From assembly GCA_051530055.1 (NCBI GenBank), contig CM121341.1:13308784-13372783 (forward strand): a DNA stretch of 64,000 nucleotides. Direction: 5' to 3'. The DNA comes from Neoechinorhynchus agilis. Lineage: Eukaryota > Animalia > Acanthocephala. Position 1 is the first letter of the stretch, and the number at the start of each line of letters is the position of its first letter. Of this stretch, positions 1-59,524 are shown one piece after another. A program made the position numbers and the translations under genes. The notes below the pieces were generated by a model, which searched no databases, was not told the origin of the DNA, and saw only the letters and a program-made list of their open reading frames with translations.

Positions 1-410
1 AAGGTAATTCCAGCATTTATACGGGACGAGCTATCCGCTATGTTACTGTTATGATTCTCACTTCACCATTGTAGATCCCTGAAGACGCCGTTAAACGGCG
101 AAAGTTTTGAAAAACAAAAGACTTATAAATAAGTGCGCAAATTGTCAAACAAAATTTAAGGGGGCAAAGATTAAACAATGCGCGATAATCAACCGGTGAT
201 CCATTGGATTATTAACATGTGGTTGGACAAACCGATACTCACCGCTGTAATAAACTACATAGCGATGTTGGAAAGTTTGAAGAGTCGAGAGCAGCGAATC
301 CTATTCCTTAAGAGATGTCTTAAGAATAAGGTAATTCCAGCATTTATACGGGACGAGCTATCCGCAATGTCACTGTTATGATTGTCACTTCTCCACTTCA
401 CCATTGTAGA

Positions 411-445
411 TCCCTGAAGAGGCCGTTAAACGGCGAAAGCTTGGA
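411..445 (+). ncRNA. Minimal type I hammerhead ribozyme (intact)
   Basis: UCC-CUGAAGA-G-GCCGU(UAA)ACGGC-GAA-AGCU-U^GGA: core, 5-bp helix II, palindromic AGCU in place of helix III, helix I UCC/GGA. Confidence 0.8.
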
Positions 446-512
446 AAAACAAAAGACTTATAAATAAGTGCGCAAATTGTCAAACAAAATTTAAGGGGAC
501 AAAGATTAAACA

Positions 513-719
513 ATGCGCCTGAATAATCAACCGGTGATCCATTGGATTATTAACATGTGGTTGGACAAACCGATACTCACCGCTGTAATAAACTACATAG
601 CGATGTTGGAAAGTTTGAAGAGTCGAGAGCAGCGAATCCTATTCCTTAAGAGATGTCTTAAGAATAAGGTAATTCCAGCATTTATACGGGACGAGCTATC
701 CGCAATGTCACTGTTATGA
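513..719 (+). CDS. 68-aa ORF resembling the N-terminal domain of Penelope-like element proteins; paralogous ORFs at 178-381, 852-1085, 1190-1396 and 1528-1734
   Basis: The LKSREQRILFLKRCLKNKVIPAFIR motif resembles the recalled PLE N-terminal pattern L..L.FL..C....iIP.Fi. Translation is not shown. Confidence 0.5.
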   Translation: MRLNNQPVIHWIINMWLDKPILTAVINYIAMLESLKSREQRILFLKRCLKNKVIPAFIRDELSAMSLL

Positions 720-748
720 TTGTCACTTCTCCACTTCACCATTGTAGA

Positions 749-783
749 TCCCTGAAGAGGCCGTTAAACGGCGAAAGCTTGGA
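749..783 (+). ncRNA. Minimal type I hammerhead ribozyme (intact)
   Basis: Same sequence as 411-445. Confidence 0.8.
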
Positions 784-1425
784 AAAACAAAAGACTGACA
801 AATCACTTCACCGATTGTCAAACAAAATTAAAGGGGAAAAAAGATTAAACAATGCGCCTGAATAGTCAAGCGGTGATCCATTGGATTGTCAACAATCGTT
901 TGGACAAACCGATACTCACCGCTGTAATAAACTACATGGCGATGTTCGAAAGGTTGAAGAGTCGAGAGCAGCGAATCCTATTCCTTAAGAGATGTCTTAA
1001 GAACAAGGTAATTCCAGCATTTATACGGGCGGGCGATCCGCTATGTATCTGTTATGATTCTCACTTCTCCAATTCACCATTGTAGATCGCTGAAGAATCC
1101 GTTGAACGGCAAAAGCTTGGAAAAACAAAAGACTAATTAATCAGTGCGCCGATTGTCAAACAAAATTAAAGGGGGAAAAAGATTAAACAATGCGTCTGGA
1201 TAATCAAGCGGAGATCCATAGGATTATCAACACGCGGTTGGACAAACCGATACTCACCGCGGTAATAAACTACATGGCGATGTTGGAAAGTTTGAAGAGT
1301 CGAGAGCGACGAATCCCATTCCTTAAGAGATGTCTTAAGAACAAGGTAGTTCCAGCATTTATACGGGACGAGTTATCCGCTATGTCACTGTTATGATTTT
1401 CACTTCTCTACTTCACCATTGTAGA

Positions 1426-1460
1426 TCCCTGAAGAGGCCGTTAAACGGCGAAAGCTTGGA
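1426..1460 (+). ncRNA. Minimal type I hammerhead ribozyme (intact)
   Basis: Same sequence as 411-445. Neighbouring copies at ~1087-1121 and ~1765-1799 carry G12>A and are probably inactive. Confidence 0.8.
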
Positions 1461-2103
1461 AAAACAAAACTGATAAATCAGTTCGCCGATTGTCAAACAA
1501 AATTAAAGTGGATTAAAAGATTAAACAATGCGCCTGAATAATCAAGCGGAGATCCATAGGATTATCAACACGCGGTTGGACAAACCGATACTCACCGCTG
1601 TAATAAACTACATGGCGATGTTGGAAAGTTTGAAGAGTCGAGAGCAGCGAATCCCATTCCTTAAGAGATGTCTTAAGAACAAGGTAATTCCAGCATTTAT
1701 ACGGGACGAGTTATCCGCTATGTCACTGCTATGATTCTCACTTCTCCACTTCAAAATTTGTAGATCCCTGAAGAGGCCGTTGAACGGCAAAAGCTTTTAA
1801 AAACAAAAGACTAATTAATCAGTGCGCCGATTGTGAAACAAAATTAAAGGGGGGAAAAGATTAAACAATTCGTCTGGATAATCAAGCGGAGATCCATAGG
1901 ATTATCAACACGCGGTTGGACAAACCGATACTCACCGCTGTAATAAACTACATGGCGATGCTGGAAAGTTTGAAGAGTCGAGAGCAGCGAATCCCATTCC
2001 TTAAGAGATGTCTTAAGAACAAGGTAGTTCCAGCATTTATACGGGACGAGTTATCCGCTATGTCACTGTTATGATTCTCACTTCTCTACTTCATCATTGT
2101 AGA

Positions 2104-2138
2104 TCCCTGAAGAGGCCGTTAAACGGCGAAAGCTTGGG
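2104..2138 (+). ncRNA. Minimal type I hammerhead ribozyme (intact)
   Basis: Core and helix II intact; helix I is UCC/GGG. Confidence 0.78.
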
Positions 2139-3140
2139 AAAACAAAAGACTGATAAATCAGTTCGCCGATTGTCAAACAAAATTAAAGTGGATTAAAAGA
2201 TTAAACAATGCGCCTGAATAATCACGCGGTGATCCATAGGATTGTCAACGGTCCTTATCCGTTAATATGGGTATATGCAGTCGAGGGATGTCCGTTCGGG
2301 AGGTAATATCTGTTCGGAGGGATGTCTATTCGGGTAGGAACTATCCAGTCGGGGATGGTTCGTTCGGGTAAGAATGTGTCCGTTCTTTTGAGAATATTTT
2401 GTTTGGTTTGAAGGTCCGTTCTCGAGGGAATTGGCGGATATTGTTTGCGGGAGAACTTGTAAGGTTGGTCTTTCCTCAGAATCATTTCAACTTCTGATAT
2501 CCGAGAAGATTGGGCAACATGGAGAAAGGAGCGCAGATATAAGGAGGCGCGAGGTATAGGAGGGCGAAACGGATTAGGATTACGAGTGCTGCGTTCATGA
2601 GAAAAGGTGGTGATGTGTGATAGAAAATGGTGGTGGTAGGGTTTATATGCGTTTTGATTGTTTTATGGAACTATGATGAGTTTCTAATTCGGGCAAATCA
2701 TTGAGATAGGAGCCCTATTTTTCGAATGTTATAAGTAAAGAAAATTCACAGATCTCGAAATTCTTTGAGAAGTTTTGATGGTTAAATCATTGACTCTATG
2801 CAATCAAGGCACAAACCGAGGTCGTTATATGTTTCTTATCCCAGTGCATTTCTTTGGTACAATCGTTGTTTAAGTTTTAGTTTTCGCTGTATTATTAATG
2901 ATTTAAAAGGCTGATCGTCCAATTTGTTCACCCTTTATCCTTGGGCGTACACGCGTCGTGCGCTTTCCCTGTATACTTCACATTTCGTTTTTAGATTTAA
3001 ACTTAAGGAATGCCTTTGAAAAATAGATCCTTTAAGCTGTAACACAGCCAAAAATTGCATTTTTTCCTTCTTTAGAATGTCCTCTTGTGCTACGGCCACA
3101 GGACCTATCATAATAGTCAATATTTTTATAAAATCTAAAT

Positions 3141-4748
3141 TCATACGATATAGTGATCAAAGAACATTTTGCCTTGTCTTCGGTGAGTAAAGTCGTATGC
3201 GCCACGTCTACGCCAACAACAAAGTACTTGAGTTGATTTGATAAGTGGATATAAAACAATCGGTGCAGATACCATTGTGCTCCAAATCCATCCGACAATC
3301 CTAGCATTCCGGCCAAACCCGGAATCAGTTTCAAATATCTCTTCAAGTGAAAAAACGTGTAAAATCAAACATGCCATTGGTACAACAATCTTTAGTACGG
3401 GTCGTATGAATTCGATGAAATTTGAGTTAATTTCTTCATAAAATGCGGTTTGTAGCTGAATTAAGAAAACTCGAAAGTCGTAGATGGCAAAGATGCCGGC
3501 GATTTCCAAAATTGCAACAATGAACAGTGCTGGCATTACAGTAAATGTATCGAAGAAGGAAATAAGGAAGTTTCCTTTGGTTTCCAGGACGGTTGGAATC
3601 GATATTAGACAAGAAATGGTGACAATCAAAAATCTATTGAGCTTTTCGTTCTTCATTGACCATTTGAATTGACCAACAAGAGCCGCGTGGATTGTCTCGA
3701 CGAGAGCCATAGTTGTGTTTAAGGCCATTAAGAAGAGACTTCCAAAAAACGCAAATGAATGAAGATGCGGTAATTTGGATTGGTGGACGTGGATTAGATA
3801 TTCCGAGAAAATCATTGAGTAATGCGCAATATTGGTGTGATTATTTGACCAAACGGCTTCAATAGAGTATCCAATCCCTGAAAATACCGTTAACGCTGAA
3901 ATAAAACCCATCGTAATGGATCCGGCGGATAAAAAGATCACGAGCTTAATAACGTCTTTCAATTTTAGTGTTTCTGTATTGCTATAAGAGGAGTACGTGC
4001 TTAGAACACCTAGACCGATACCAAGAATCCGGAATGAATAAAATCCCGCATCTTCCCATGTACTGAAATATCCAAGAACGGATATATCCGGCCTTATAAC
4101 CATTTTCATGCCTTCCCTGCAGTTCTCATTAAACAACGACACAATTAAAATTAATAAAAAAATAAAGACTGGAGTAACTGCTGTAACGTAAGATACTCTT
4201 CCAATGCTTCTCGGACCGTGATATACGAGTAGATAAGTGAGAATACTTATAAGAACTAAGAGTGGTACCAGTTCAGTTTGAAGTCCGAATACTTGTTGTT
4301 TTTCGTTTGAAAGTGTTGTGTTGAGAAGAACTTGATTTGAGTTCCACTGAGTACTGATTGATTCGAGGCATAGACGAAGTATATGGGTTGAAAGCCCGTT
4401 GTTGATAAAAAGAGCGTTTAGACAAATTACGAGAACCGTAATACCTAAACCTTTAAGTGGACGGAATATCGATCCAAATGCCATTATGACACCGTCGGAA
4501 AATACGTGTCCCATAAATAGCTCGAATCCAGCCAATGGGATTCCTAACAGGACAAAGGACACAATAAGTGGTACAATAAATACAAGACCACCGTTTCTGT
4601 ACATTAACAACGGAAATTGTAAAACACTTGCAAGACTGCAAATGAATCCCATGAGTGTAATGAAATATGAATATTTATTTGGGAATCGCTCTTTTTGTTT
4701 CATTGGTATTGGTGGAATGGGTACGCTGATCATTATTCTAAAAGACAT
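3141..4748 (-). CDS. Intronless SLC6 / sodium:neurotransmitter symporter family transporter, 535 aa, divergent
   Basis: GFICSLASVLQFPLLMYRNGGLVFIVP...GIPLAGFELFMGH aligns to SNF TM1-TM2 (GLGNVWRFPYL..NGGGAFL.PY...GIPL..LE..LGQ); multiple hydrophobic segments. Confidence 0.85.
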   Translation of the reverse strand: MSFRIMISVPIPPIPMKQKERFPNKYSYFITLMGFICSLASVLQFPLLMYRNGGLVFIVPLIVSFVLLGIPLAGFELFMGHVFSDGVIMAFGSIFRPLKGLGITVLVICLNALFINNGLSTHILRLCLESISTQWNSNQVLLNTTLSNEKQQVFGLQTELVPLLVLISILTYLLVYHGPRSIGRVSYVTAVTPVFIFLLILIVSLFNENCREGMKMVIRPDISVLGYFSTWEDAGFYSFRILGIGLGVLSTYSSYSNTETLKLKDVIKLVIFLSAGSITMGFISALTVFSGIGYSIEAVWSNNHTNIAHYSMIFSEYLIHVHQSKLPHLHSFAFFGSLFLMALNTTMALVETIHAALVGQFKWSMKNEKLNRFLIVTISCLISIPTVLETKGNFLISFFDTFTVMPALFIVAILEIAGIFAIYDFRVFLIQLQTAFYEEINSNFIEFIRPVLKIVVPMACLILHVFSLEEIFETDSGFGRNARIVGWIWSTMVSAPIVLYPLIKSTQVLCCWRRRGAYDFTHRRQGKMFFDHYIV

Positions 4749-23545: not shown

Positions 23546-23585
23546 TATGCTCTTGTTAAAAAAAAATCTTCAGATTGAAAAAAAA

Positions 23586-24755
23586 ATAATCCAAGATATT
23601 TATATTTATCTTGAAATGTTTGGATGAAGCCTCTATAAGAATACAATGAGAATTCTTATATAAACAACGACGATGCATCTAAAATACATTTATATTTATG
23701 TTTTCCCACGAAGATAATAATCCAAGACATTTATATTTCGCTTGAAATGTTTGGATGAAGCCTCTATAAGAATACAATGAGAATTCTTATATAAACAACG
23801 ACGATGCATCTAAAATACATTTATATTTATCTTTTCCCACGAAGATAATAATCCAAGACATTTATATTTCGCTTGAAATGTTTGGATGAAGCCTCTATAA
23901 GAATACAATGAGAATTCTTATATAAACAACGACGATGCATCTAAAATACATTTATATTTATCTTTTCCCACGAAGATAAAAATCCAAGATATTTATATTT
24001 CGCTTGAAATTTTTGGATGAAGCAACGACGATGCATCCAAAGTACATTTATATTTATCTTTTCCCACGAAGATAATAATCCAAGACATTTATATTTCGCC
24101 TGAAATGTTTGGATGAAGCCTCTATAAGAATACAATGAGAATTCTTATATAAACAACGACGATGCATCTAAAATACATTTATATTTATCTTTTCCCACGA
24201 AGATAAAAATCCAAGATATTTATATTTCGCTTGAAATTTTTGGATGAAGCAACGACGATGCATCCAAAGTACATTTATATTTATCTTTTCCCACGAAGAT
24301 AATAATCCAAGACATTTATATTTCGCTTGAAATGTTTGGATGAAGCCTCTATAAGAATACAATGAGAATTCTTATATAAACAACGTCGATGCATCTAAAA
24401 TACATTTATATTTATCTTTTCCCACGAAGATATATATTTCGCTTGAAATGTTTGGATGAAGCCTCTATAAGAATACAATGAGAATTCTTATATAAACAAC
24501 GACGATGCATCTAAAATACATTTATATTTATCTTTTCCCACGAAGATAATAATCCAAGATATTTATATTTCGCTTGAAATTTTTGGATGAAGCAACGACG
24601 ATGCATTTAAAATACATTTATATTTATCTTTTCCCAGGAAGATAATAATCCAAGACATTTATATTTCGCTTGAAATGTTTGGATGAAGCCTTTATAAGAA
24701 TACAATGAGAATTCTTATATAAACAACGACGATGCATCTAAAATACATTTATAAA
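23586..24755. repeat. Satellite of 131-bp and 96-bp units with a 227-bp higher-order repeat
   Basis: ATAATCCAAG-type starts at 23586, 23717, 23848, 23979, 24075 and onward. The duplicated ORFs 23941 and 24168 are 227 bp apart. Confidence 0.95.
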
Positions 24756-34983: not shown

Positions 34984-35973
34984 ATGACTCATAACCAACA
35001 GCGATTCACTCACCATCACCACCAACAGCAACCATTGGAAGTTGTTCGTCAGAGACCAGTTCAATCAGGAACGATGCATCCTTCTCTACGAAAGCCTATG
35101 ATGGCTAGAGCTGTCACTGGTCGTGTAAAGTGGTTCAACGTTAAGCGAGGCTATGGATTCGTAAACAGAGACGATACACACGAGGACGTCTTTATTCACC
35201 AAACGTCCATAATCCGCAATAATCCTAATAAGTATTTAAGAAGTGTTGGTGACAATGAGCCTCTTGTATTTGACGTAGTCAAAGGAGAGAAAGGAATGGA
35301 GGCGGCTAATGTCACCGGCCCAAACGGAGCGCCGGTTCAGGGTTCAAGATACGCAGCAGATCGTCCTCAAAGAGAGTTCGGACCACGTCGTGGTCAACTG
35401 TATGGCTTCTATAGGAACAGAGCCGCTTATAATGGAAACAGCCAAACGAACCAAATACAAGCAGCTCCCATGATGTACCCTCCGCCAGCATTTGTGGCAA
35501 ACACAGCCGCTGCGGCTTATTTCTACCATCATCTTTACCAACAAGGAGCGCAGTTCAATCAGGCTCAATTGGCACCGCATTACTACATGGGTATACCACC
35601 CAATCAGATAAACGGATACCAAACGACGGACGAAGGCCTTTGCATTTCAACAACGGCCCCAATAGTTAACGATTATGTCAATTCACCGCTTAGTACTTCC
35701 GCAAATGATTCAGCGACACCTCCACTTCCAGATATGCCGGCACCGATGGTAACACCTCCAAGCCACCACTTGAACAATAATAATACGGCTTATTTCACGC
35801 CGCAATCTAGATCTCAAAGAGGCAGAGACCAGCAACGTAATGGGTTGAACAACTCTCATCATTCATCAGGTCATAGGCAATCGCGGGGGAGAGGACGTCG
35901 GAGTCGCAGACGTCGATACAATGGCAGGGGTGCTCGAGGATCTGCTCCATTACCGGGCCAAGGAACCCAATAA
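34984..35973 (+). CDS. YBX1: Y-box cold-shock-domain protein
   Basis: [45 protein letters not shown]...AANVTGP, with an Arg-rich C-terminus. The paralog identity is uncertain. Confidence 0.9.
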
Positions 35974-41663: not shown

Positions 41664-41715
41664 CAATCGCTGAAGAAGATCTGAGATAGTGGATCGAAAT
41701 ATCAAATCAATAAAT
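41664..41715 (+). ncRNA. Minimal hammerhead with intact core but unpaired helix I
   Basis: CUGAAGA-A-GAUC(...)GAUC-GAA-AUAU-C^AAAUC-AAUAAA. Confidence 0.55.
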
Positions 41716-41917: not shown

Positions 41918-43790
41918 TTGACTCTAAGAGGCTCGCTTATAATGAGTCAATCAAACATTGCTAATTTTAATAATTTCATTTTAGCACAGTTAGCTAAATG
42001 TAAAAACATCACACTAAGACCCTTTAATGAGATTATTGTACGCTCGGCCAATCGGAATCTGGTAGTCTCTCAATATATCAGGAAACCCCTTAAAAGTAAA
42101 ATTGCCAACTTCTTTTATCGCCAGGCTATTGTCGCTGACTTAAGTGGTAATGCTGCACTGCATAAGAGATACATGGAGAATTTTTACAAAACCTTTTTTT
42201 TCCAAATTGAGAGATATGAGAATTTTTAAAGAAACAAAGAAATTTTTCTAAGGACTTTTGGTCAATCATCCTTAACAGGAAACCAGTTTGGTAAGATTAC
42301 TAAGCGCTGCTTGGTTGTTCAGCCGCATGTTTTATCTATTGATGATTGTTTGATTGACAATCCGACTGAAAGAGAGAGATTTTATTGAAACACCTAGCTT
42401 TCGCCGTCCAACGGCTTCTTCGGGGTGTAATTGTTTGTTAGTTTGACAATCCGACTGAAAGAGAGAGATTTTATTGAAATACCTAGCTTTCGCCGTCCAA
42501 CGGCTTCTTCAGGGTGTAATTGTTTGTTAGTTATTAAACCAGTTTAATGGAAAAGCAAAGCTGTTAGCTGGATCGGTTCAATCTCATTCCCAAGTGTTAT
42601 TGAACAAATTTTAAATTATCACACATTAGTGCTTTCTCTCAAACAATTTAGATGGAATTTTAAACTAACTGAGTTTCTTAACGCCTGTAAGCCTAATCCT
42701 TCCAGGGCCTTTAATAAAGTTTCCGTTTCTCCGAAATTTTTTACTTCGATGTACGGATCCATATTTACTCTTTTCCATCATAAATTTTATCAATACAAAT
42801 TAGATTTTAAGGATCTTCAAGAGATTAATATTGTAAAGAAAATGTTTATTCCGAAAGCTAAAGGTGCCATTAGCACGCCAAATCACATTAGAATCATTGC
42901 CATTCAAAATCCTATAATATCCTGTTTAGAGAGAATAGTCAATAACTCTCTTCTGAATTTTTTATACTCGAAAAACTAATCCCTCCATATTTTCACGGAT
43001 TTGTACGCAAAAGAGGTGTGCACTCACTTTTAAATGACTTGAATAATCTTAATCTTCCAATACACACAAATGAATTGTTAATCCAATTAGACCTGTTTAA
43101 TTGAAGGTCCCTTTAAACCTCATTTATAAGATTCAACACCTTATTGAATCCAAATCTTTTTATTATGAGGTGGATCCTTCGTGCACTAGATTTTACTCTA
43201 AATTCGGCGTTCCTCAAGGCTCGCCTTTATCTCCCACCCTCTTTCTTATTGTAACTATTTTTATATTCAAATCAATGAAGGGTTTTAGAAGCATACATCC
43301 ACTAGTCTATGCGGATGATATTTTTTTATTTTGTTCTGCTTAAAAAAATTAATTATTAATGTAAATAAGACTTTTATAATACCATTGACTAAATCCCGTC
43401 TTCCAAGGCGATCCCTAGTCAATCTTCTAAATTCTTCGCCCTTTTATAAAGGCGTTACAACTAAAATGCATACGCGACTATTAGGTATTAATTTCCCCTC
43501 GTCCGCTAACAGATTCTTTATAAATACTCATTTTAAATCTACTTTTAATAAAATTAAAGTAATCATTAAGAGGTATCGGTATCTTTCGCAGGACAAGGGT
43601 GTTCTCTACAACATTCTCGAAACTCTGATAAGGGGATCTGTCTGTTTTTTCGCTAGGGGTCGTCCTCCTGAAATGAGGCATGATTCTTTCAATAAGTTTT
43701 ATAATAAATTAAAGCAATTAATGAACAATCTAAAGTTAGAAGTGGATCCCATAAACTCCTTTTTATTAAAATTACTTTTTACAAAAATCT
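41918..43790 (+). mobile_element. Degenerate LINE reverse transcriptase region (same broad family as 59819-60763)
   Basis: IRIIAIQNP..CLERIV, FHGF, GVPQGSPLSPTLF, YADD, RLLG; stops and deletions present. Confidence 0.8.
42354..42531 (-). ncRNA. Tandem pair (89-bp unit) of minimal hammerheads inserted in the LINE
   Basis: ACACC-CUGAAGA-A-GCCGU(UGG)ACGGC-GAA-AGCU-A^GGU(G/A)U-UUCAAUAAA; the copy at 42390-42428 has U4>C. Confidence 0.85.
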
Positions 43791-46880: not shown

Positions 46881-47736
46881 CAGGGTGTAACACACCCTTA
46901 GTACCCCCCCTCCACAAGGAAAACTATAACAGATATTCTGATGCGGTTTTCGGGGTTTGAAAGCTTATTTCAATACGCTTCTGAACACACCCCTACTACC
47001 CCCCTCCACAGAAAAAAACAGTGAAGATAGAAAGATGTGTTTATCACCATTGGAAAGCTTATTTCAATACGGATTCAACGGTATATCGCACTATGACATT
47101 CAATAATCAGTTAGGCCGCCATTGGCCTCCAGAACGGCCTTGATACGGGCAGGGTAGGAGCTCAAGAAGCGCTCGAACAGGCCGATGTTTCCGCGCAGCC
47201 CGGTCAGCACGACGTCGATGGCTCGACGCAGGGCTGCTTGGGAGTGGTCTCCGTCCTGCCGGAGATGCTCCTCGACCCCGTCCTTGATGATCGCTCCAAT
47301 GTGTTCAGCGAGGTTGAGGTCCGGAGACGACCCGGGCCACTCGGAGCTGGAGAAGAAGTCGAGTACGGAATCCCGGAGGAGCGCCTGGGTTGCAAGTGCC
47401 TTGCAGCACGGCGCCTTGTCGTGGAGGAAGGTGACATCTTGGACGCTGAGCACGTTTTGAGGGTTTTTCAAGAAGGGATTGACCTGCTCCGACAGAATAG
47501 AGCGGAAGTATTCGCCGTTCCACTTGGCCCCCTCCTCCTTGATGACCCAGAGGATCGCCTTCGCCGTGAACACCACGAAGATGCCGATGCAGGCTGGGGC
47601 TTGGGGGAGGCCGTGGGGGCGAAGTTATATATCGTTAGAAGCGTATTGAAATAAGTTTTCAAACCATGAAAACCGCATTAGAATATCTGTTATAGTTTTC
47701 CTTGTGGAGGGGGTACTAAGCGTGTGTTACACCCTG
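46881..47736 (-). mobile_element. Internally deleted Tc1/mariner element (D37E spacing), ~100-bp TIRs, TA target duplication
   Basis: TA|CAGGGTGTAACAC...GTGTTACACCCTG|TA; HDKAP...WPGSSPDLNLAE with 37 residues between D and E; subterminal direct repeat in the left end. Confidence 0.92.
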
Positions 47737-47974
47737 TATAGTTAACAGTAAAAAGAATGGTTGCTGATTACCTTTGAAAGTGAGTCTTTAAAAAACTCAT
47801 GATCTAAAAAAACTCGCGAAGTTGTCGTGCTGTTATAATTTTCATGCATAAACGTTTATACGAAACTTCTAAATCAACGCTTTTATAAAATGTTCAAATG
47901 ACATTGAAAATGTAGGTTAATGAAGTAAACGTTTATTAAACAGCGGTTCATATGATTTCAATTTGCGTCAAAAA

Positions 47975-49909
47975 TCATACAATTGGGCCTATCCGAACTG
48001 ACTTATCCTGACTTGCAATAGCAACGAGCGTCGCATTATCATCATTGGTGGTAATGCCATCAACATCAAAAACAATCACGTCTTTTGGTAGAAATTTTGA
48101 AGCCAGGGGGGCGTTCGTCTTTCGAATATCCCATTCAAATACTTGACCGCGACCCGAAGCCGTAAGGACCCGAGTGCTTTTGTCCAATACTCTGACCCTG
48201 TAGGTCCATCTCTGATGACCACCGAGTCTGAATGCTTCCTTTAGATCTAAATGTACGACGATACTATTGCTATACGCGAAAAAGGAAAAGTATATGGACC
48301 GTTTCGACAATCTAGAGCTTTAGCAAATTCGTCAGCCAAACTAATGTAGATAAGGTTATCATCGAAGCTAAAATCCGCCGATAAACAACTCGTGTGCATC
48401 ATCTAAATCCATTGATGGAAAATTGACAGTTTTTTCTCCATTAAAAATACCTGTTTTTGAACACACGTCATAGAGTCGATGCTCCATATTTTTGTATAAC
48501 GATCAGTATAAGAACACGACAATGCTTCAGTATCTGATATCCACTTAAGCGCCATCAGAGGCCCTCTAACATGAGCATCTTTTATCGCTAACAATGCCTC
48601 TGAATCTTTCTCCAATTTCTTCAAAATCCACAAACGTATTGATCCATCGTCACTACCACTAATAAGGCGGTGATCACGAACACTGAAGCACCGTACAGCG
48701 TCGTCATGAATCAATTCCCGTTCATTTGAAAACCCTTCGTCATTCTCAAATGCACGAATTAAACCGTCTTCACATGAGCAGAGGATAAGATTGTCAATTA
48801 CTTCAACTTGAGTAACGGCTGCTGGCAAAAGTTCGGGTGACCTTTCAATCAATGATTTCTCAAGAGAAATTTTCAAAAGTGGACAAATCAACGATGCATC
48901 ATAAAAGCCTTCCAATCATCCACCTTATCATAGATTCTAACGTAGCCGTCAAAACATCCACTTATGATTTTGGATTTTGATAATAACCTAAAGTTTGTGT
49001 GTGTGAGAGAGCAAATAGATTAAATAGATGGATACTTGCAAAAACGTAGATACGCCGCCGATGCAACTAAAAAGCGCATGAACTTTTAAGCATAGAAATG
49101 CTCAAAAGCACATAGAAAATACAAACGACCACGAATTCTTGATTTTCGCCAGAGATGCACACAAAAACGCCAGTACAAATAGATGGATAATTCCAAAAAC
49201 GTAAACGATGCCACACAAGAACCCATGTATACACGTGAACACTAGCAAAAATTTTGATTTGTGGTGAAGATAATCAATCATCTGGATAAACCTTATTTTA
49301 TTGTAATGAAATGTTCTAAACACTTGCGAAACAATGATTAATAATGCGAGGAGGTTTCCTCTTTCGAAATATTTCGCGAACAATAAAATACGTTTTATCC
49401 GGGTGATTATGATCACCACAAATCAAAATTTACTATCCCGATATGGATTTTTCAATCGATATGAATAGCAAAAATATATAGATCTCCGTATGCACCGACA
49501 CTAACACGAAAAAGACTCAAGAACGCGAAATACCTTACGCACGAAACCCAATCTTGGTGTTTTAGTTTCTTGTCCTTTTCATCGGACAATCGTTCCGGCT
49601 CGTATTCAATCATTATAATTTGCTCCTATCGCACAAATTAAAAAACTCTCGTGAAGGAAATTGAATAAATGGTACCCTCTTGTCAGGTAACTGATCGAGT
49701 AGTGACCTAAGATCAGATTGTATTTTAAGATCCTCATGATAGAACGTGTAATTGATCGATTGGTTGATCTTTGACTCTGCCGATTTGATTAACTGATTGA
49801 GATAATCAACGCTGACGTCCGGAGATACACGAATGGGCGCACTGTATGCGTTTTTAATATTCTTGGTTAAGAGCGGTCCAAGTGCAAAGAAAAAACGAAA
49901 ACCTTTCAT
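47975..49909 (-). CDS. WDR12: WDR12/Ytm1-like NLE-WD40 protein, multi-exon (left copy)
   Basis: N-terminal NLE-like exon, then LISGSDDGSIRLW, DRYTKIWS, GHQRW and WDIRKTNAPL (compare WDR12 WDTRSCKAPL). Confidence 0.6.
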
Positions 49910-50456
49910 CTTGATTGGAGAATCTTTGACGAAAAGAGATATTTATAAAGTCCGTCGTAGAATTCATCTGAATATAATAATTGTAAACGCCGATAGACTG
50001 AATTTTTTCATTATATAGCAAACTCTTCGAATGCTAAACAGCGAAAGTATTCTCCTCTACCTACTTTTTTGGGCTAAAAATTGAAAAGCGTTAATCTGCT
50101 TCCCTATTTCCAACGACAACAACACTATCAATGCAACTGGGCGGCGTTAAGATCTTCATTTACGATATTCTTAGACGAAAGAACGCTTGTTAAGATGTTG
50201 ACGTTCTCTTTAGGACAGATTTAAAGTATTTAAGGATCTTCATTCTAAAAATTGAAGTACACCGTTAAATTGAAGTATTCACCACTTCATAAATTGGTGA
50301 AACTCGCGCAATAATTCCACTGAAACGGTCAGCTAAGAGAAAACTCAACAAGAAGGAAAATTAGGGACGAAGTCGTTCCGTAGCTTATTTCTCTGTGAAC
50401 GTTCAACGTTTTAGGCTAAAATTTGGGTACATTTCTAAAGAGAGCGTGAACTTCTT

Positions 50457-50528
50457 TAGCAGCGAGTTGCTTCGATCCACCGACCTCTTAGTTATGAGAC
50501 CGGCACGCTTTTTCTGCTCCACGCTGCT
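50457..50528 (-). pseudogene. tRNA-iMet(CAT) pseudogene
   Basis: D-loop GG lost; D and anticodon stems mismatched. Confidence 0.8.
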
Positions 50529-51600
50529 GATTGCAGGTGCAAGCGGATAATCAGCAATGCCCAACTCCAATCTGGAGGGATGGTGAAGACAGTTTCAAGC
50601 AAGTTAACTGATCGAGTGCTCGCTGGCGAGTTCGCTCGATTCAATCGTGTTTTGAATGTACAACTACGGAAAAATTGGCATCGCAGAGAGTTCATTATTT
50701 GATTCGTTGTGGAATACCGCAGCACACAGTTGTTCGATTTGAAGAAATTCAAGGAGCTGTCTCTCACGAGGACTTCAAGACCTTCGGACTTGCCACTCCC
50801 CTCGCGCTGAAAAATTCATCTGAGCGAAAATCATTGTCCCTGACTCCGTTAAAAAAATAAGAATTAATAGGTAGATGATGTGAGAAATGCCTAGACGCGA
50901 GAGTAAAGGAGACTCCCACTGCACTGCGTCTAGGATTGATAAGACCTTTGGATGGAGTGGTTGCCGAATTCATCACCGGACTCCGACGAGTCAGAACCGT
51001 GTTTTTTTGCTTGCTCCAAACTCTGCTAGCAGAAGTGCTCTGAGCATTATGGCTCAGATTATGGTTGTGCGGCGAACGCTGAGATTCGTTGGCTATTTTT
51101 TTCAACAACACGTTTTATTTATTTTGTTTAAGAATAGGACCCATGTACTTCTGGGTCCTCGTGATCACTTTAGAGTTGATGACGGATCCGGAGTGGATGA
51201 AGGATAGCGAGGGTGATGGTCAACGACGACGAGGTCGTCGAGAGAGAGGCAAGCCAAATGTTTTCTTTGCCTTCCCTGAACCTGACATTATGATGTGATA
51301 AGACGGCATTATTGCTTTTATTGGCTATTGTTCTCTAATTATCCAAAGAAGCATCCTAAATTGAGAGAAAGTTTTCTATTTATCCTGTCTATGCACTAAA
51401 ACGAAAGCGCACAACGCCACGCTGCTGCTGATGGAACTGCCCATGCAAGGTACGAAATTTCAAAGATCCAAAACAACAAATGTTGAGCGTAAAGCACGAA
51501 TATAGCTTCTTGGGTCATTATCTCACTTTGTATTTCAAAAGGAAGGAATCAGTTTGAATTTACATATTTGTGCATCATGTTCCATATTTAATTGGCAATC

Positions 51601-51672
51601 AGCAGCGTGGCGCAGAGGAAGCGTGCTGGGCTCATAACTCAGAGGTCGGTGGATCGAAACCACTCGCTGCTA
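51601..51672 (+). tRNA. trnM: Initiator tRNA-Met (CAT)
   Basis: A1-U72 pair, 7-bp acceptor AGCAGCG/CGCTGCT, CAT anticodon, initiator-type T-loop ATCGAAA; G30.U40 wobble. Confidence 0.93.
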
Positions 51673-51742
51673 AGAGAGAGAATTGAACACCGGAAGGATC
51701 GAGACAAGGTTTTAATCGTTAATCCGATGAAGGAACTTAAAG

Positions 51743-53183: not shown

Positions 53184-53611
53184 AATTGATATTTGGCGCA
53201 ATTAAGGAATTAAAGATTAATTTAATTAATTTTCGGCCTGAGCGTGGGCCATCTTCAGATATCTAAAACACGTCATTTTACAAACATTTGTCCTTTAGGA
53301 CGTATATCAGGTGGAAATCGCAGGTGGAGTTTGTAATCCGCCTTATTGTGCGTAAATGTACGCGTTGTTTGTATTAAAATGGCCTCCATCGTTGTTCTGT
53401 CTCTACGGTTATCACATTTTGCTGGAATCTCAGTGGCATCAAAATTGATCTGGTGATCATTTTCAATCACGTAGTGTACAATCGCAGAGCTTGTATCCAT
53501 TTTTCTGGACACAGTTCTACGATGTTTGTTGAGCCGCCTAAAAACAAACGAACATTATAAAGAGACGGCTTAAATTAATCTATAATTCTTTAGTTGCGCC
53601 AAATATCAATT
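53184..53611 (-). mobile_element. 5'-truncated Penelope-like element: GIY-YIG C-terminus, hammerhead and inverted tail copy
   Basis: RRLNKHRR...SSAIVHY..ENDHQINFDATEI...RTTMEAILI; 42-bp inverted repeats 53184-53225 / 53570-53611. Confidence 0.8.
53222..53263 (-). ncRNA. Minimal hammerhead ribozyme
   Basis: CUGAAGA-U-GGCC(CACGCUCA)GGCC-GAA-AAUU-A^AU, about 15 nt after the GIY-YIG stop. Confidence 0.7.
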
Positions 53612-54935: not shown

Positions 54936-55190
54936 GTTTTGTACTTTATTATTTTATGATTAAAAAATGTTATCTTGTTTTTATAAAATCGAATACTTTG
55001 CTATTTATTGTTAAAAGGGACGCGTTTTGTATTCAAATTTCAGCTTCGGAGATTTAAGAGATGTTGAAAATAAGTAAGCGAAATTGTGAAAAAGAACTAA
55101 AGAAAGTATTTCATAAACAAAGAACAATCAAATGTCGAAGAATACAGGAAACCGCAAAAGATTGTCCAGCCGGTGTTCTATTCTCTCTTT

Positions 55191-55262
55191 TAGCAGCGAG
55201 TGGTTTCGATCCACCGACCTCTGAGTTATGAGCCCAGCACGCTTCCTCTGCGCCACGCTGCT
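55191..55262 (-). tRNA. trnM: Initiator tRNA-Met (CAT), mirrored copy
   Basis: Reverse complement of 51601-51672. Confidence 0.93.
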
Positions 55263-56334
55263 GATTGCCAATTAAATATGGAACATGATGCACAAATATG
55301 TAAATTCAAACTGATTCCTTCCTTTTGAAATACAAAGTGAGATAATGACCCAAGAAGCTATATTCGTGCTTTACGCTCAACATTTGTTGTTTTGGATCTT
55401 TGAAATTTCGTACCTTGCATGGGCAGTTCCATCAGCAGCAGCGTGGCGTTGTGCGCTTTCGTTTTAGTGCATAGACAGGATAAATAGAAAACTTTCTCTC
55501 AATTTAGGATGCTTCTTTGGATAATTAGAGAACAATAGCCAATAAAAGCAATAATGCCGTCTTATCACATCATAATGTCAGGTTCAGGGAAGGCAAAGAA
55601 AACATTTGGCTTGCCTCTCTCTCGACGACCTCGTCGTCGTTGACCATCACCCTCGCTATCCTTCATCCACTCCGGATCCGTCATCAACTCTAAAGTGATC
55701 ACGAGGACCCAGAAGTACATGGGTCCTATTCTTAAACAAAATAAATAAAACGTGTTGTTGAAAAAAATAGCCAACGAATCTCAGCGTTCGCCGCACAACC
55801 ATAATCTGAGCCATAATGCTCAGAGCACTTCTGCTAGCAGAGTTTGGAGCAAGCAAAAAAACACGGTTCTGACTCGTCGGAGTCCGGTGATGAATTCGGC
55901 AACCACTCCATCCAAAGGTCTTATCAATCCTAGACGCAGTGCAGTGGGAGTCTCCTTTACTCTCGCGTCTAGGCATTTCTCACATCATCTACCTATTAAT
56001 TCTTATTTTTTTAACGGATTCAGGGACAATGATTTTCGCTCAGATGAATTTTTCAGCGCGAGGGGAGTGGCAAGTCCGAAGGTCTTGAAGTCCTCGTGAG
56101 AGACAGCTCTTTGAATTTCTTCAAATCGAACAACTGTGTGCTGCGGTATTCCACAACGAATCAAATAATGAACTCTCTGCGATGCCAATTTTTCCGTAGT
56201 TGTACATTCAAAACACGATTGAATCGAGCGAACTCGCCAGCGAGCACTCGATCAGTTAACTTGCTTGAAACTGTCTTCACCATCCCTCCAGATTGGAGTT
56301 GGGCATTGCTGATTATCCGCTTGCACCTGCAATC

Positions 56335-56406
56335 AGCAGCGTGGAGCAGAAAAAGCGTGCCGGTCTCATAACTAAGAGGTCGGTGGATCGAAGCAACTCG
56401 CTGCTA
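56335..56406 (+). pseudogene. tRNA-iMet pseudogene, mirrored copy
   Basis: Reverse complement of 50457-50528. Confidence 0.8.
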
Positions 56407-56953
56407 AAGAAGTTCACGCTCTCTTTAGAAATGTACCCAAATTTTAGCCTAAAACGTTGAACGTTCACAGAGAAATAAGCTACGGAACGACTTCGTCCCT
56501 AATTTTCCTTCTTGTTGAGTTTTCTCTTAGCTGACCGTTTCAGTGGAATTATTGCGCGAGTTTCACCAATTTATGAAGTGGTGAAGACTTCAATTTAACG
56601 GTGTACTTCAATTTTTAGAATGAAGATCCTTAAATACTTTAAATCTGTCCTAAAGAGAACGTCAACATCTTAACAAGCGTTCTTTCGTCTAAGAATATCG
56701 TAAACTAAGATCTTAACGCCGCCCAGTTGCATTGATAGTGTTGTTGTCGTTGGAAATAGGGAAGCAGATTAACGCTTTTCAGTTTTTAGCCCAAAAAAGT
56801 AGGTAGAGGAGAATACTTTCGCTGTTTAGCATTCGAAGAGTTTGCTATATAATGAAAAAATTCAGTCTATCGGCGTTTACAATTATTATATTCAGATGAA
56901 TTCTACGACGGACTTTATAAATATCTCTTTTCGTCAAAGATTCTCCAATCAAG

Positions 56954-58888
56954 ATGAAAGGTTTTCGTTTTTTCTTTGCACTTGGACCGCTCTTAACCAA
57001 GAATATTAAAAACGCATACAGTGCGCCCATTCGTGTATCTCCGGACGTCAGCGTTGATTATCTCAATCAGTTAATCAAATCGGCAGAGTCAAAGATCAAC
57101 CAATCGATCAATTACACGTTCTATCATGAGGATCTTAAAATACAATCTGATCTTAGGTCACTACTCGATCAGTTACCTGACAAGAGGGTACCATTTATTC
57201 AATTTCCTTCACGAGAGTTTTTTAATTTGTGCGATAGGAGCAAATTATAATGATTGAATACGAGCCGGAACGATTGTCCGATGAAAAGGACAAGAAACTA
57301 AAACACCAAGATTGGGTTTCGTGCGTAAGGTATTTCGCGTTCTTGAGTCTTTTTCGTGTTAGTGTCGGTGCATACGGAGATCTATATATTTTTGCTATTC
57401 ATATCGATTGAAAAATCCATATCGGGATAGTAAATTTTGATTTGTGGTGATCATAATCACCCGGATAAAACGTATTTTATTGTTCGCGAAATATTTCGAA
57501 AGAGGAAACCTCCTCGCATTATTAATCATTGTTTCGCAAGTGTTTAGAACATTTCATTACAATAAAATAAGGTTTATCCAGGTGATTGATTATCTTCACC
57601 ACAAATCAAAATTTTTGCTAGTGTTCACGTGTATACATGGGTTCTTGTGTGGCATCGTTTACGTTTTTGGAATTATCCATCTATTTGTACTGGCGTTTTT
57701 GTGTGCATCTCTGGCGAAAATCAAGAATTCGTGGTCGTTTGTATTTTCTATGTGCTTTTGAGCATTTCTATGCTTAAAAGTTCATGCGCTTTTTAATTGC
57801 ATCGGCGGCGTATCTACGTTTTTGCAAGTATCCATCTATTTAATCTATTTGCTCTCTCACACACACAAACTTTAGGTTATTATCAAAATCCAAAATCATA
57901 AGTGGATGTTTTGACGGCTACGTTAGAATCTATGATAAGGTGGATGATTGGAAGGCTTTTATGATGCATCGTTGATTTGTCCACTTTTGAAAATTTCTCT
58001 TGAGAAATCATTGATTGAAAGGTCACCCGAACTTTTGCCAGCAGCCGTTACTCAAGTTGAAGTAATTGACAATCTTATCCTCTGCTCATGTGAAGACGGT
58101 TTAATTCGTGCATTTGAGAATGACGAAGGGTTTTCAAATGAACGGGAATTGATTCATGACGACGCTGTACGGTGCTTCAGTGTTCGTGATCACCGCCTTA
58201 TTAGTGGTAGTGACGATGGATCAATACGTTTGTGGATTTTGAAGAAATTGGAGAAAGATTCAGAGGCATTGTTAGCGATAAAAGATGCTCATGTTAGAGG
58301 GCCTCTGATGGCGCTTAAGTGGATATCAGATACTGAAGCATTGTCGTGTTCTTATACTGATCGTTATACAAAAATATGGAGCATCGACTCTATGACGTGT
58401 GTTCAAAAACAGGTATTTTTAATGGAGAAAAAACTGTCAATTTTCCATCAATGGATTTAGATGATGCACACGAGTTGTTTATCGGCGGATTTTAGCTTCG
58501 ATGATAACCTTATCTACATTAGTTTGGCTGACGAATTTGCTAAAGCTCTAGATTGTCGAAACGGTCCATATACTTTTCCTTTTTCGCGTATAGCAATAGT
58601 ATCGTCGTACATTTAGATCTAAAGGAAGCATTCAGACTCGGTGGTCATCAGAGATGGACCTACAGGGTCAGAGTATTGGACAAAAGCACTCGGGTCCTTA
58701 CGGCTTCGGGTCGCGGTCAAGTATTTGAATGGGATATTCGAAAGACGAACGCCCCCCTAGCTTCAAAATTTCTACCAAAAGACGTGATTGTTTTTGATGT
58801 TGATGGCATTACCACCAATGATGATAATGCGACGCTCGTTGCTATTGCAAGTCAGGATAAGTCAGTTCGGATAGGCCCAATTGTATGA
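56954..58888 (+). CDS. WDR12: WDR12/Ytm1-like protein (right copy)
   Basis: Exon ORFs (98, 170 and 111 aa) are protein-identical to the left copy. Confidence 0.6.
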
Positions 58889-59126
58889 TTTTTGACGCAA
58901 ATTGAAATCATATGAACCGCTGTTTAATAAACGTTTACTTCATAAACCTACATTTTCAATGTCATTTGAACATTTTATAAAAGCGTTGATTTAGAAGTTT
59001 CGTATAAACGTTTATGCATGAAAATTATAACAGCACGACAACTTCGCGAGTTTTATAGATCATGAGTTTTTTTAAAGACTCACTTTCAAAGGTAATCAGC
59101 AACCATTCTTTTTACTGTTAACTATA

Positions 59127-59524
59127 CAGGGTGTAACACATGCTTAGTACCCCCTCCACAAGGAAAACTATAACAGATATTCTGATGCGGTTTTTAGGGT
59201 TTGAAAGCTTATTTCAATACGCTTCTAACGATATATAACTTCGCCCCCACGGCCTCCCCCAAGCCCCAGCCTGCATCGGCATCTTCGTGGTGTTCACGGC
59301 GAAGGCGATCCTCTGGGTCATCAAGGAGGAGGGGGCCAAGTGGAACGGCGAATACTTCCGCTCTATTCTGTCGGAGCAGGTCAATCCCTTCTTGAAAAAC
59401 CCTCAAAACGTGCTCAGCGTCCAAGATGTCACCTTCCTCCACGACAAGGCGCCGTGCTGCAAGGCACTTGCAACCCAGGCGCTCCTCCGGGATTCCGTAC
59501 TCGACTTCTTCTCCAGCTCCGAGT
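59127..59524 (+). mobile_element. Truncated mirror copy of the Tc1 element (one TIR plus partial transposase)
   Basis: TA|CAGGGTGTAAC...; homology stops at ...CCAGCTCCGAGT. Confidence 0.9.

Follow-up and report, generated by a model that had tools for sequence, protein, structure and literature searches.

Penelope-like elements (PLEs) carry in their terminal repeats a minimal form of the hammerhead ribozyme, characterized by a G10.1-C11.1 base pair, a palindromic tetramer at positions 15.2-16.2, an unpaired nucleotide after A9 and the absence of helix III, and the families of these motifs are full of compensatory changes (Cervera & de la Pena 2014, PMC4209133). Animal non-LTR retrozymes are tandem repeats of 150-450 bp with low GC content and without a long terminal repeat (LTR), primer binding site (PBS) or polypurine tract (PPT); they contain canonical type I hammerheads with loop-loop contacts and produce abundant linear and circular RNA, and minimal hammerheads are set apart from them as PLE and Terminon variants (Cervera & de la Pena 2020, PMC7229834). 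A preprint argues from vertebrate data that animal retrozymes are related to the terminal repeats of PLEs and are non-autonomous derivatives of these elements (Li, Clavereau & Pollet 2026, 10.64898/2026.07.22.740005). For PLEs in general, shortened, head-to-tail multicopy derivatives have been described, and inverted 5′-truncated copies are a typical feature (Craig et al. 2021, PMC8557442). Here we analyze a hammerhead-bearing tandem array at the left end of a 64,000-nucleotide stretch (the window) of the genome of the acanthocephalan Neoechinorhynchus agilis (assembly GCA_051530055.1, contig CM121341.1, positions 13,308,784 to 13,372,783).

The array is probably a non-autonomous, internally deleted ("gutted") PLE with a retrozyme-like organization, now decaying, in which the small open reading frame (ORF) of each unit is a passenger relic. 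Its 338-bp unit, GC content of 40.6% and type I hammerhead fall within the published description of animal retrozymes. It resembles these elements (PMC7229834; 10.64898/2026.07.22.740005) in having units within the 150-450-bp range, a type I hammerhead, low GC content and no reverse transcriptase (RT) of its own, in its proposed dependence on PLE enzymes and in its sequence kinship with PLE termini. Unlike retrozymes, its motif is minimal rather than a canonical hammerhead with contacts between the loops of helices I and II, it retains about 59 PLE codons, it is represented in RNA by traces only, and its monomer RNA shows no unusual degree of structure. The canonical hammerhead is lacking and abundant RNA was not seen in RNA-library contigs; the array is best filed as a gutted PLE that is retrozyme-like on paper.

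Results

A 338-bp tandem array with a minimal hammerhead in every unit

Tandem Repeats Finder reports a repeat of period 338 with 6.7 copies, 91% matches and a score of 3624 at window positions 1-2249, and alignment of the units places a Penelope-type minimal hammerhead and a frame of 67-77 codons on the same strand of every one. The original prediction, made from the sequence alone, had described a head-to-tail array of about 6.7 units of ~338 bp, a 67-77-aa ORF in the units, four intact hammerheads of the PLE minimal type (at 414, 752, 1429 and 2107), an ORF resembling a PLE N terminus and the absence of RT or endonuclease from the array. All of this anatomy stands: the repeat is recovered by Tandem Repeats Finder and by unit alignment, the ORFs by the frame list and the alignment, and the four intact ribozymes by the alignment; the motif shows every published hallmark of its type, sequence searches (HMMER, tblastn) match the ORF to PLE proteins over their first ~60 residues, and neither Pfam nor tblastn with PLE proteins finds RT or endonuclease in either arm.

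The window holds only part of the array. On a 21.4-kb chromosome stretch of CM121341.1 (GCA_051530055.1) retrieved in reverse orientation (L004; window coordinate = 14515 minus L004 coordinate), the true array is a 4.8-kb head-to-head double array, and window 1-2249 belongs to one of its arms. L004 was reached via the window's own 457-aa SNF transporter product, P0010; contig searches with the 68-aa ORF and with the 535-aa SNF frame as queries found no contig on record that encodes either. The coordinates of all features are collected in Table 1.

The array hammerhead reads CUGAAGA-G-GCCGU-uaa-ACGGC-GAA-AGCU-U. Its short helix I consists of GGA/UCC, a 3x3 internal loop and ACAA/UUGU; loop 1 is absent and loop 2 has 3 nt. 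The minimum-energy structure of the isolated motif has helices I and II folded. A pattern search placed cores of the form CTGAAGA-N-GCCGT/ACGGC-GAA-AGCT-T at 79, 414, 752, 1429 and 2107, and found 11 matches to the hammerhead pattern across the window against 0.7 expected, a number that no shuffle reached. The whole double array has 15 hammerheads; CUGANGA and GAAA boxes in type I order are complete in five of them, the intact copies, four of which lie in the window. The change of G12, a conserved core base, to A presumably disables the copies at 1090 and 1768. No Rfam hammerhead family matched window positions 1-2400 at the gathering score or at E<=10, perhaps owing to the missing helix III, and self-cleavage in vitro is weak even for published minimal hammerheads.

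All four hallmarks of PLE hammerheads (PMC4209133) are present in the array. Like the PLE terminal-repeat motifs described there, that of the array is of type I with an unpaired nucleotide between A9 and 10.1 and a G10.1-C11.1 pair, has a palindromic tetramer instead of helix III, so that it would be expected to work as a dimer of two copies, and combines a short helix I containing an internal loop with motifs that also occur on opposite strands at distances of a few hundred bp. It differs from the Schistosoma families in having a helix II of 5 bp versus 7-8 bp, and from the PLEs of that study in recurring every 338 bp versus every ~3 kb. In every family examined in the window and the additional loci, the unpaired nucleotide after A9 is G, C or A and is followed by the G...C pair that closes helix II. 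Helix II itself varies while staying paired (GCCGU/ACGGC, GAUCYG/UGGAUC, GGCGU/GCGCC, GGCC/GGCC and GACGU/ACGUC), and the tetramer is always palindromic (AGCU in the array, and AUAU, AAUU and ACGU). A related copy at 42.5 kb has GGU/ACC in the place of helix I GGA/UCC, a two-sided change.

Past the cut site there is a small hairpin in the leader (window 456-470 and the equivalent place in other units), ACUUAU..AUAAGU, which in other units reads ACUGAU..AUCAGU, a two-sided change, noted by eye only, with pairing preserved. The hairpin is possibly a structured part of the PLE leader.

The small ORF is the start of a PLE protein

A HMMER search of 1.84 billion representative proteins gave nine matches to the ORF. 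Residues 1-60 align to residues 1-60 of P0005 (729 aa, E 1e-4) and of P0008 (568 aa, E 5e-4), and in the protein alignment conservation runs from M1 through FLKRC..IP.FI with nothing conserved afterwards. P0005 matches RVT_1 in Pfam (E 4e-8), and DKG and RT-type motifs can be seen by eye in both proteins. In tblastn, PLE proteins match every array unit at E 1e-8 to 1e-12, and the homology ends at 686-692, equivalent to residues 58-60. The stop 8-9 codons beyond this deletion joint looks fortuitous. The last ~25-30 nt of the stretch between the joint and the next hammerhead resemble the pre-hammerhead stretch of a paralogous copy on another chromosome (L001).

The 68-aa ORF has no Pfam match, and the protein search returned no homologous small protein, its length limits making it silent on longer relatives. 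An AlphaFold2 model built from a 9-row alignment is a four-helix bundle with a predicted local distance difference test score (pLDDT) of 68.6; Foldseek found no PDB fold match below E 3.7, and the fold gives no indication of function.

Elsewhere in the same assembly, diverged (~50% amino acid identity) fragments of the same PLE N terminus are found at L001 4940-5315 and, on the same chromosome as the array, at L005 4200-4360. The L001 fragment lies directly behind a degenerate hammerhead and has been annotated as a gene (P0001/P0002). At neither locus is the N-terminal fragment followed by an RT.

A near-complete relative indicates what the unit has lost

P0008 is encoded on L003, a 3574-bp marine-metagenome contig that holds a near-complete PLE with a C-terminal endonuclease. 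Identical minimal hammerheads stand at 130 and 3203 of this contig, 3073 bp apart, and the left terminal repeat begins just 2 nt ahead of the CUGAUGA box. The ATG at 233 lies ~75 nt past the predicted cut, a spacing like that between hammerhead and ATG in the array, and a second ORF contains YVDD and a GIY-YIG region, VYQIVC..C..YVGET (Pfam E 0.004). The right terminal repeat of L003 stops 118 nt beyond the cut, within codon 14; the array stops after codon 14, at 114 nt. The right edge of the array therefore sits at the element terminus of the relative. Because the N-terminal homology of the ORF, the distance from hammerhead to ATG and the 3′ terminus all agree with L003, the unit can be described as a PLE minus ~2.7 kb. 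Of the single ORF with RT and GIY-YIG domains that defines an autonomous PLE, only the first ~59 codons are present.

Searches by tblastn with P0005, P0008 and L003 ORF2 found no RT or endonuclease of the array's family in the window, L001, L004 or L005; the one RT/endonuclease match belonged to the 5′-truncated PLE of another family to the left of the array. The RT-like ORFs of the window (43-46 kb and 59.8-62.9 kb) are unmatched to these PLE proteins at E below 0.001-0.01. The original prediction had noted that the array might simply continue into an ordinary full-length PLE; on L004, no full-length PLE of the same family adjoins it.

Two arms joined head to head

The arms meet by their 5′ ends at the joint -387/-386 and their 3′ ends point outward. 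Arm B starts at the joint with GGCCG, right after a lost CUGAAGA box, and arm A starts with GAAGAGUCGAG, in ORF codons 33-35; the outer end of arm B lies ~72 nt past its last cut site, just ahead of the ATG. Both inner ends are thus 5′-truncated and both outer ends fall shortly past a hammerhead. The double array shows the architecture of PLE insertions, with partial tandem terminal repeats and an inverted 5′-truncated copy.

In the source sequence, the hexamer GAAGAG adjoins both inversion breakpoints (L004 14895-14910), as CUGAAGAG in the hammerhead and as UUGAAGAGUCG in ORF codons 33-35. A microhomology account of the joint that used this hexamer was tried, and no simple strand-switch model could be derived from it.

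Most units have their nearest copy in the other arm (A0-B0 98.5%, A1-B1 95.0%, A4-B3 96.2%, A5-B4 97.1%, A7-B4 98.2%, A6-B5 97.4% and A8-B5 100% identity), and differences between neighbors inside an arm amount to 3-12%. Divergence of the units therefore preceded the inverted copying. In arm A there is an extra dimer of the B4-B5 type, and G12>A is common to A5, A7 and B4. This pattern could have arisen at the DNA level, through an inverted duplication and later unequal exchange, or by copy-back reverse transcription of a long, already heterogeneous multimer.

The ORF fits near-neutral decay

Thirteen full ORF copies over both arms were compared, with distinct changes counted against one real copy. 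Nine of the 13 are open. A1 and B1 both stop at codon 16 and B0 at codon 28, the ATG of A7 is gone, and A4 has a frameshifted tail. The distinct changes comprise 15 synonymous, 27 non-synonymous, three stop and one start-loss, against a neutral expectation of 24%, 70%, 4% and 1.5%, respectively. Of the three stops, the one in the frameshifted A4 tail possibly results from the alignment. When only the window copies are considered, omega is ~0.54 (p 0.12) and the variable sites at codon positions 1, 2 and 3 number 7, 5 and 11; the point estimates range from 0.54 to 0.62 overall. After 8-12 random substitutions, 49-62% of copies would be open by chance. Several copies carry radical changes: W>R, V>E and, in a predicted helix, L>P.

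The ORF fits near-neutral decay. The original prediction had presented the array as a candidate protein-coding retrozyme and had stated that neutral evolution of the ORF would remove the coding claim. With dN/dS near neutral, nonsense changes, start loss and frameshift at about the neutral rate and open copies at about the chance number, the coding claim is removed by that criterion; the protein-coding part of the prediction is not supported.

RNA matching the array is scarce

Contigs from four runs of the same organism that the search tool labels as RNA (a label that is a guess) were compared with window 1-2600; these libraries may lack small RNAs. The runs contain few words of the array. Short exact contig pieces correspond to 1868-2026 and 1817-1987. 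In the right flank (2263-2600), mean contig depth is 75-1230 per bin.

Discussion

Origin of the array

According to the explanation that we prefer, a PLE of ~3 kb would have lost ~2.7 kb, leaving a unit that retains the minimal hammerhead, a 70-nt leader, the first ~59 PLE codons and the last ~60 nt preceding the next hammerhead. Read-through transcripts would be cut by pairs of neighboring hammerheads whose AGCU tetramers pair as helix III, the resulting fragments would serve as templates for a PLE RT/GIY-YIG enzyme supplied in trans, which would also carry out insertion, and unequal exchange would then have reshaped the array. Having no RT or endonuclease of its own, the array would be mobile only in trans, and its unit would have spread in the manner proposed for PLE-derived retrozyme-like elements. 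The locus looks inactive now; two thirds of its hammerheads have changes at conserved positions.

Several observations weigh against the array being a gutted, formerly mobile PLE with a relic ORF. The 338-bp unit is known here from this one locus, no autonomous PLE with the N terminus of the array was found in the window, L001, L004 or L005, and no target-site duplication of at least 7 nt surrounds the double array. The RNA-library contigs give a word depth of 0-4 on the array, although contigs cannot show circles or RNA ends, and one low-depth contig (1281-1525) bridges a predicted cut site uncut, which decides nothing on cleavage. In a search for rod-like or stable RNA, the 338-nt monomer folded no better than shuffles (z -0.28). 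Finally, ORF columns vary less than non-ORF columns (16% versus 29%, Fisher p 0.007), which may reflect some constraint on that stretch and could equally come from the indel-rich leader.

Alternatively, a single 5′-truncated or internally deleted PLE insertion, together with its terminal repeat, could have been amplified in place by unequal crossing-over and inverted duplication; the 338-bp unit would then never have been mobile and its hammerheads would have had no role in its spread. We regard such a local satellite as possible but rather unlikely. It fits a published model of satellite birth from PLE termini, and the array has a two-unit higher-order repeat (A5 and A7 are 96.2% identical, A6 and A8 95.8%, with a common G12>A), arms that mirror each other and were copied after unit divergence, just five of 15 hammerheads intact, and RNA in traces only. 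The ends of the array point the other way: both outer ends lie in the short post-hammerhead stretch expected for a PLE 3′ terminus, that of arm A exactly at the codon-14 position of the full PLE L003, and head-to-head arms with 5′-truncated inner ends are a signature of PLE insertion. These outer-end and head-to-head features could, in turn, have been inherited from one ordinary founding insertion. The possibility that the inverted arm or the array length is an assembly artefact, produced from fold-back or chimeric long reads, is extremely unlikely. Palindromic tandem arrays are difficult to assemble and a second inverted repeat in the window is 99-100% identical, but the arms of the array differ by 0-5% and have unlike numbers and orders of units, where a fold-back would be near-identical. 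A DNA run also contains 44% of the sampled words (it is possibly the assembly's own sample), and RNA-library contigs match parts of individual units exactly.

Translation of the 68-aa frame into a functional PLE N-terminal peptide, such as a trans-acting or dominant-negative factor, with selection maintaining it, seems to us very improbable. An ATG and an open frame persist in nine of 13 copies, the ORF columns are the less variable part of the unit, the omega point estimates are below 1, and the four-helix bundle is modeled with moderate confidence. Set against this, omega does not differ from 1, inactivating changes accumulate at about the neutral rate with the number of open copies fitting chance, several copies carry W>R, V>E and, in a predicted helix, L>P, the deletion joint determines where the frame ends, searches returned no small protein resembling it and no fold match, and RNA is found in traces only. 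The fuller form of this proposal, in which the 338-nt unit is a still-mobile coding retrozyme whose cut linear or circular RNA serves as template for a PLE RT in trans and also encodes the 68-aa peptide, is highly improbable. If true, it would mean that a PLE N-terminal peptide helps or restrains its parent element, and would explain why the first ~59 codons have been kept.

Relation to other PLE derivatives

Read as a gutted PLE, the locus is a clear invertebrate intermediate between a full PLE and the short hammerhead repeats of the retrozyme type. Its anatomy supports the published idea of animal retrozymes as PLE derivatives, until now argued from vertebrate data only, and it indicates that minimal, dimer-dependent hammerheads can occur in retrozyme-sized arrays. 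A connection of retrozymes with PLEs was published before, and the locus adds no new mechanism. The Chlamys/MRC1 derivatives, which are non-autonomous and form head-to-tail multicopy insertions (PMC8557442), come from a PLE clade whose endonuclease is N-terminal and lack canonical hammerheads, whereas L003, the relative of the array, has a C-terminal GIY-YIG domain and hammerheads.

Other features of the window and its surroundings

Table 1. Features of the array and its surroundings (window coordinates unless L004 is named; negative positions lie to the left of the window)
Feature	Position	Strand	Remarks
Arm A, window part (6.7 units)	1..2249	+	whole arm = L004 12266-14901 = window -386..2249; Tandem Repeats Finder, unit alignment
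Arm A, whole	-386..2249		7.8 units, 8 hammerhead cores
Arm B, inverted	-387 to about -2520		6.3 units, 6 cores and one cut through
Impaired hammerhead	79..107	+	AGCU palindrome to AGUU, helix I GG to UG; unit alignment
Intact minimal hammerhead	414..442	+	C3-A9 core, unpaired G, 5-bp helix II, GAA, AGCU palindrome, U17; predicted cut after 442
Intact minimal hammerhead	752..780	+	predicted cut after 780
Presumed dead hammerhead	1090..1118	+	G12>A, 2.1 C>G, helix II changes; unit alignment
Intact minimal hammerhead	1429..1457	+	predicted cut after 1457
Presumed dead hammerhead	1768..1796	+	G12>A as in the 1090 copy, helix I GG to UU; unit alignment
Intact minimal hammerhead	2107..2135	+	predicted cut after 2135
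Leader, 70 nt	443..512	+	predicted cut to ATG; unit alignment
ORF copy, 67 aa	178-381	+	
Relic ORF, 68 codons	513-719	+	codons 1 to ~59 = PLE ORF start; last 8-9 codons and stop beyond deletion joint
ORF copy, 77 aa	852-1085	+	tail frameshifted by 1-nt deletion
ORF copy, 68 aa	1190-1396	+	
ORF copy, 68 aa	1528-1734	+	
ORF copy with ATG>ATT	1868-2074	+	
ORF copy cut off by array end	2208-2249	+	
Approximate deletion joint (near 687-695) through ~60 nt preceding hammerhead	687..751	+	includes helix I 5′ strand; PLE homology stops at 686-692
Last, partial unit	2208..2249	+	array stops exactly after ORF codon 14, 114 nt beyond cut site; read as element 3′ terminus
Right flank, different repeat family	2250..2600	.	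degenerate 16-nt sub-repeats; outside element
Host gene: SNF-family sodium:neurotransmitter symporter	3141-4748	-	long intron-free stretch
Complex tandem repeat	23585-24753		nested periods 96, 116, 131, 227, 343 bp; 84-98% match
Host gene: cold-shock-domain protein	34984-35973	+	
Related PLE 5′ fragment	42302..42532	-	89-bp unit x2.1, each with minimal hammerhead (one U4>C), then leader and ATG (MRLNNQAAL)
Inverted repeat, ~4.35 kb	47339-51698 and 55165-59524		99-100% complementary, 3466-nt spacer
170-aa ORF in each inverted-repeat arm	48403-48915 and 57948-58460	- and +	
Identical tRNA gene in each inverted-repeat arm	51601-51672 and 55191-55262	+ and -	
Minimal hammerhead-like motif in inverted-repeat spacer	53231-53258	-	
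5′-truncated PLE, other family	L004 17590-18660 = window about -4145..-3075	+	RT thumb and GIY-YIG region

Other copies of the right-flank repeat have different sequence before the position equivalent to 2250, and the array therefore abuts or interrupts this repeat. On the left, the 5′-truncated PLE of another family lies ~500 nt from arm B and has a minimal hammerhead of its own at its end, CUGAAGA-A-GAUCCG..UGGAUC-GAA-AUAU-C; the hammerhead at window 41670-41699 is almost the same. The peptide MRLNNQAAL encoded at 42302-42532 resembles the start of the array ORF, and this fragment is either an even shorter deletion derivative or the 5′ fragment of a related PLE. The ~4.35-kb inverted repeat further to the right may have arisen by inverted duplication very recently, or may be a fold-back created in assembly.

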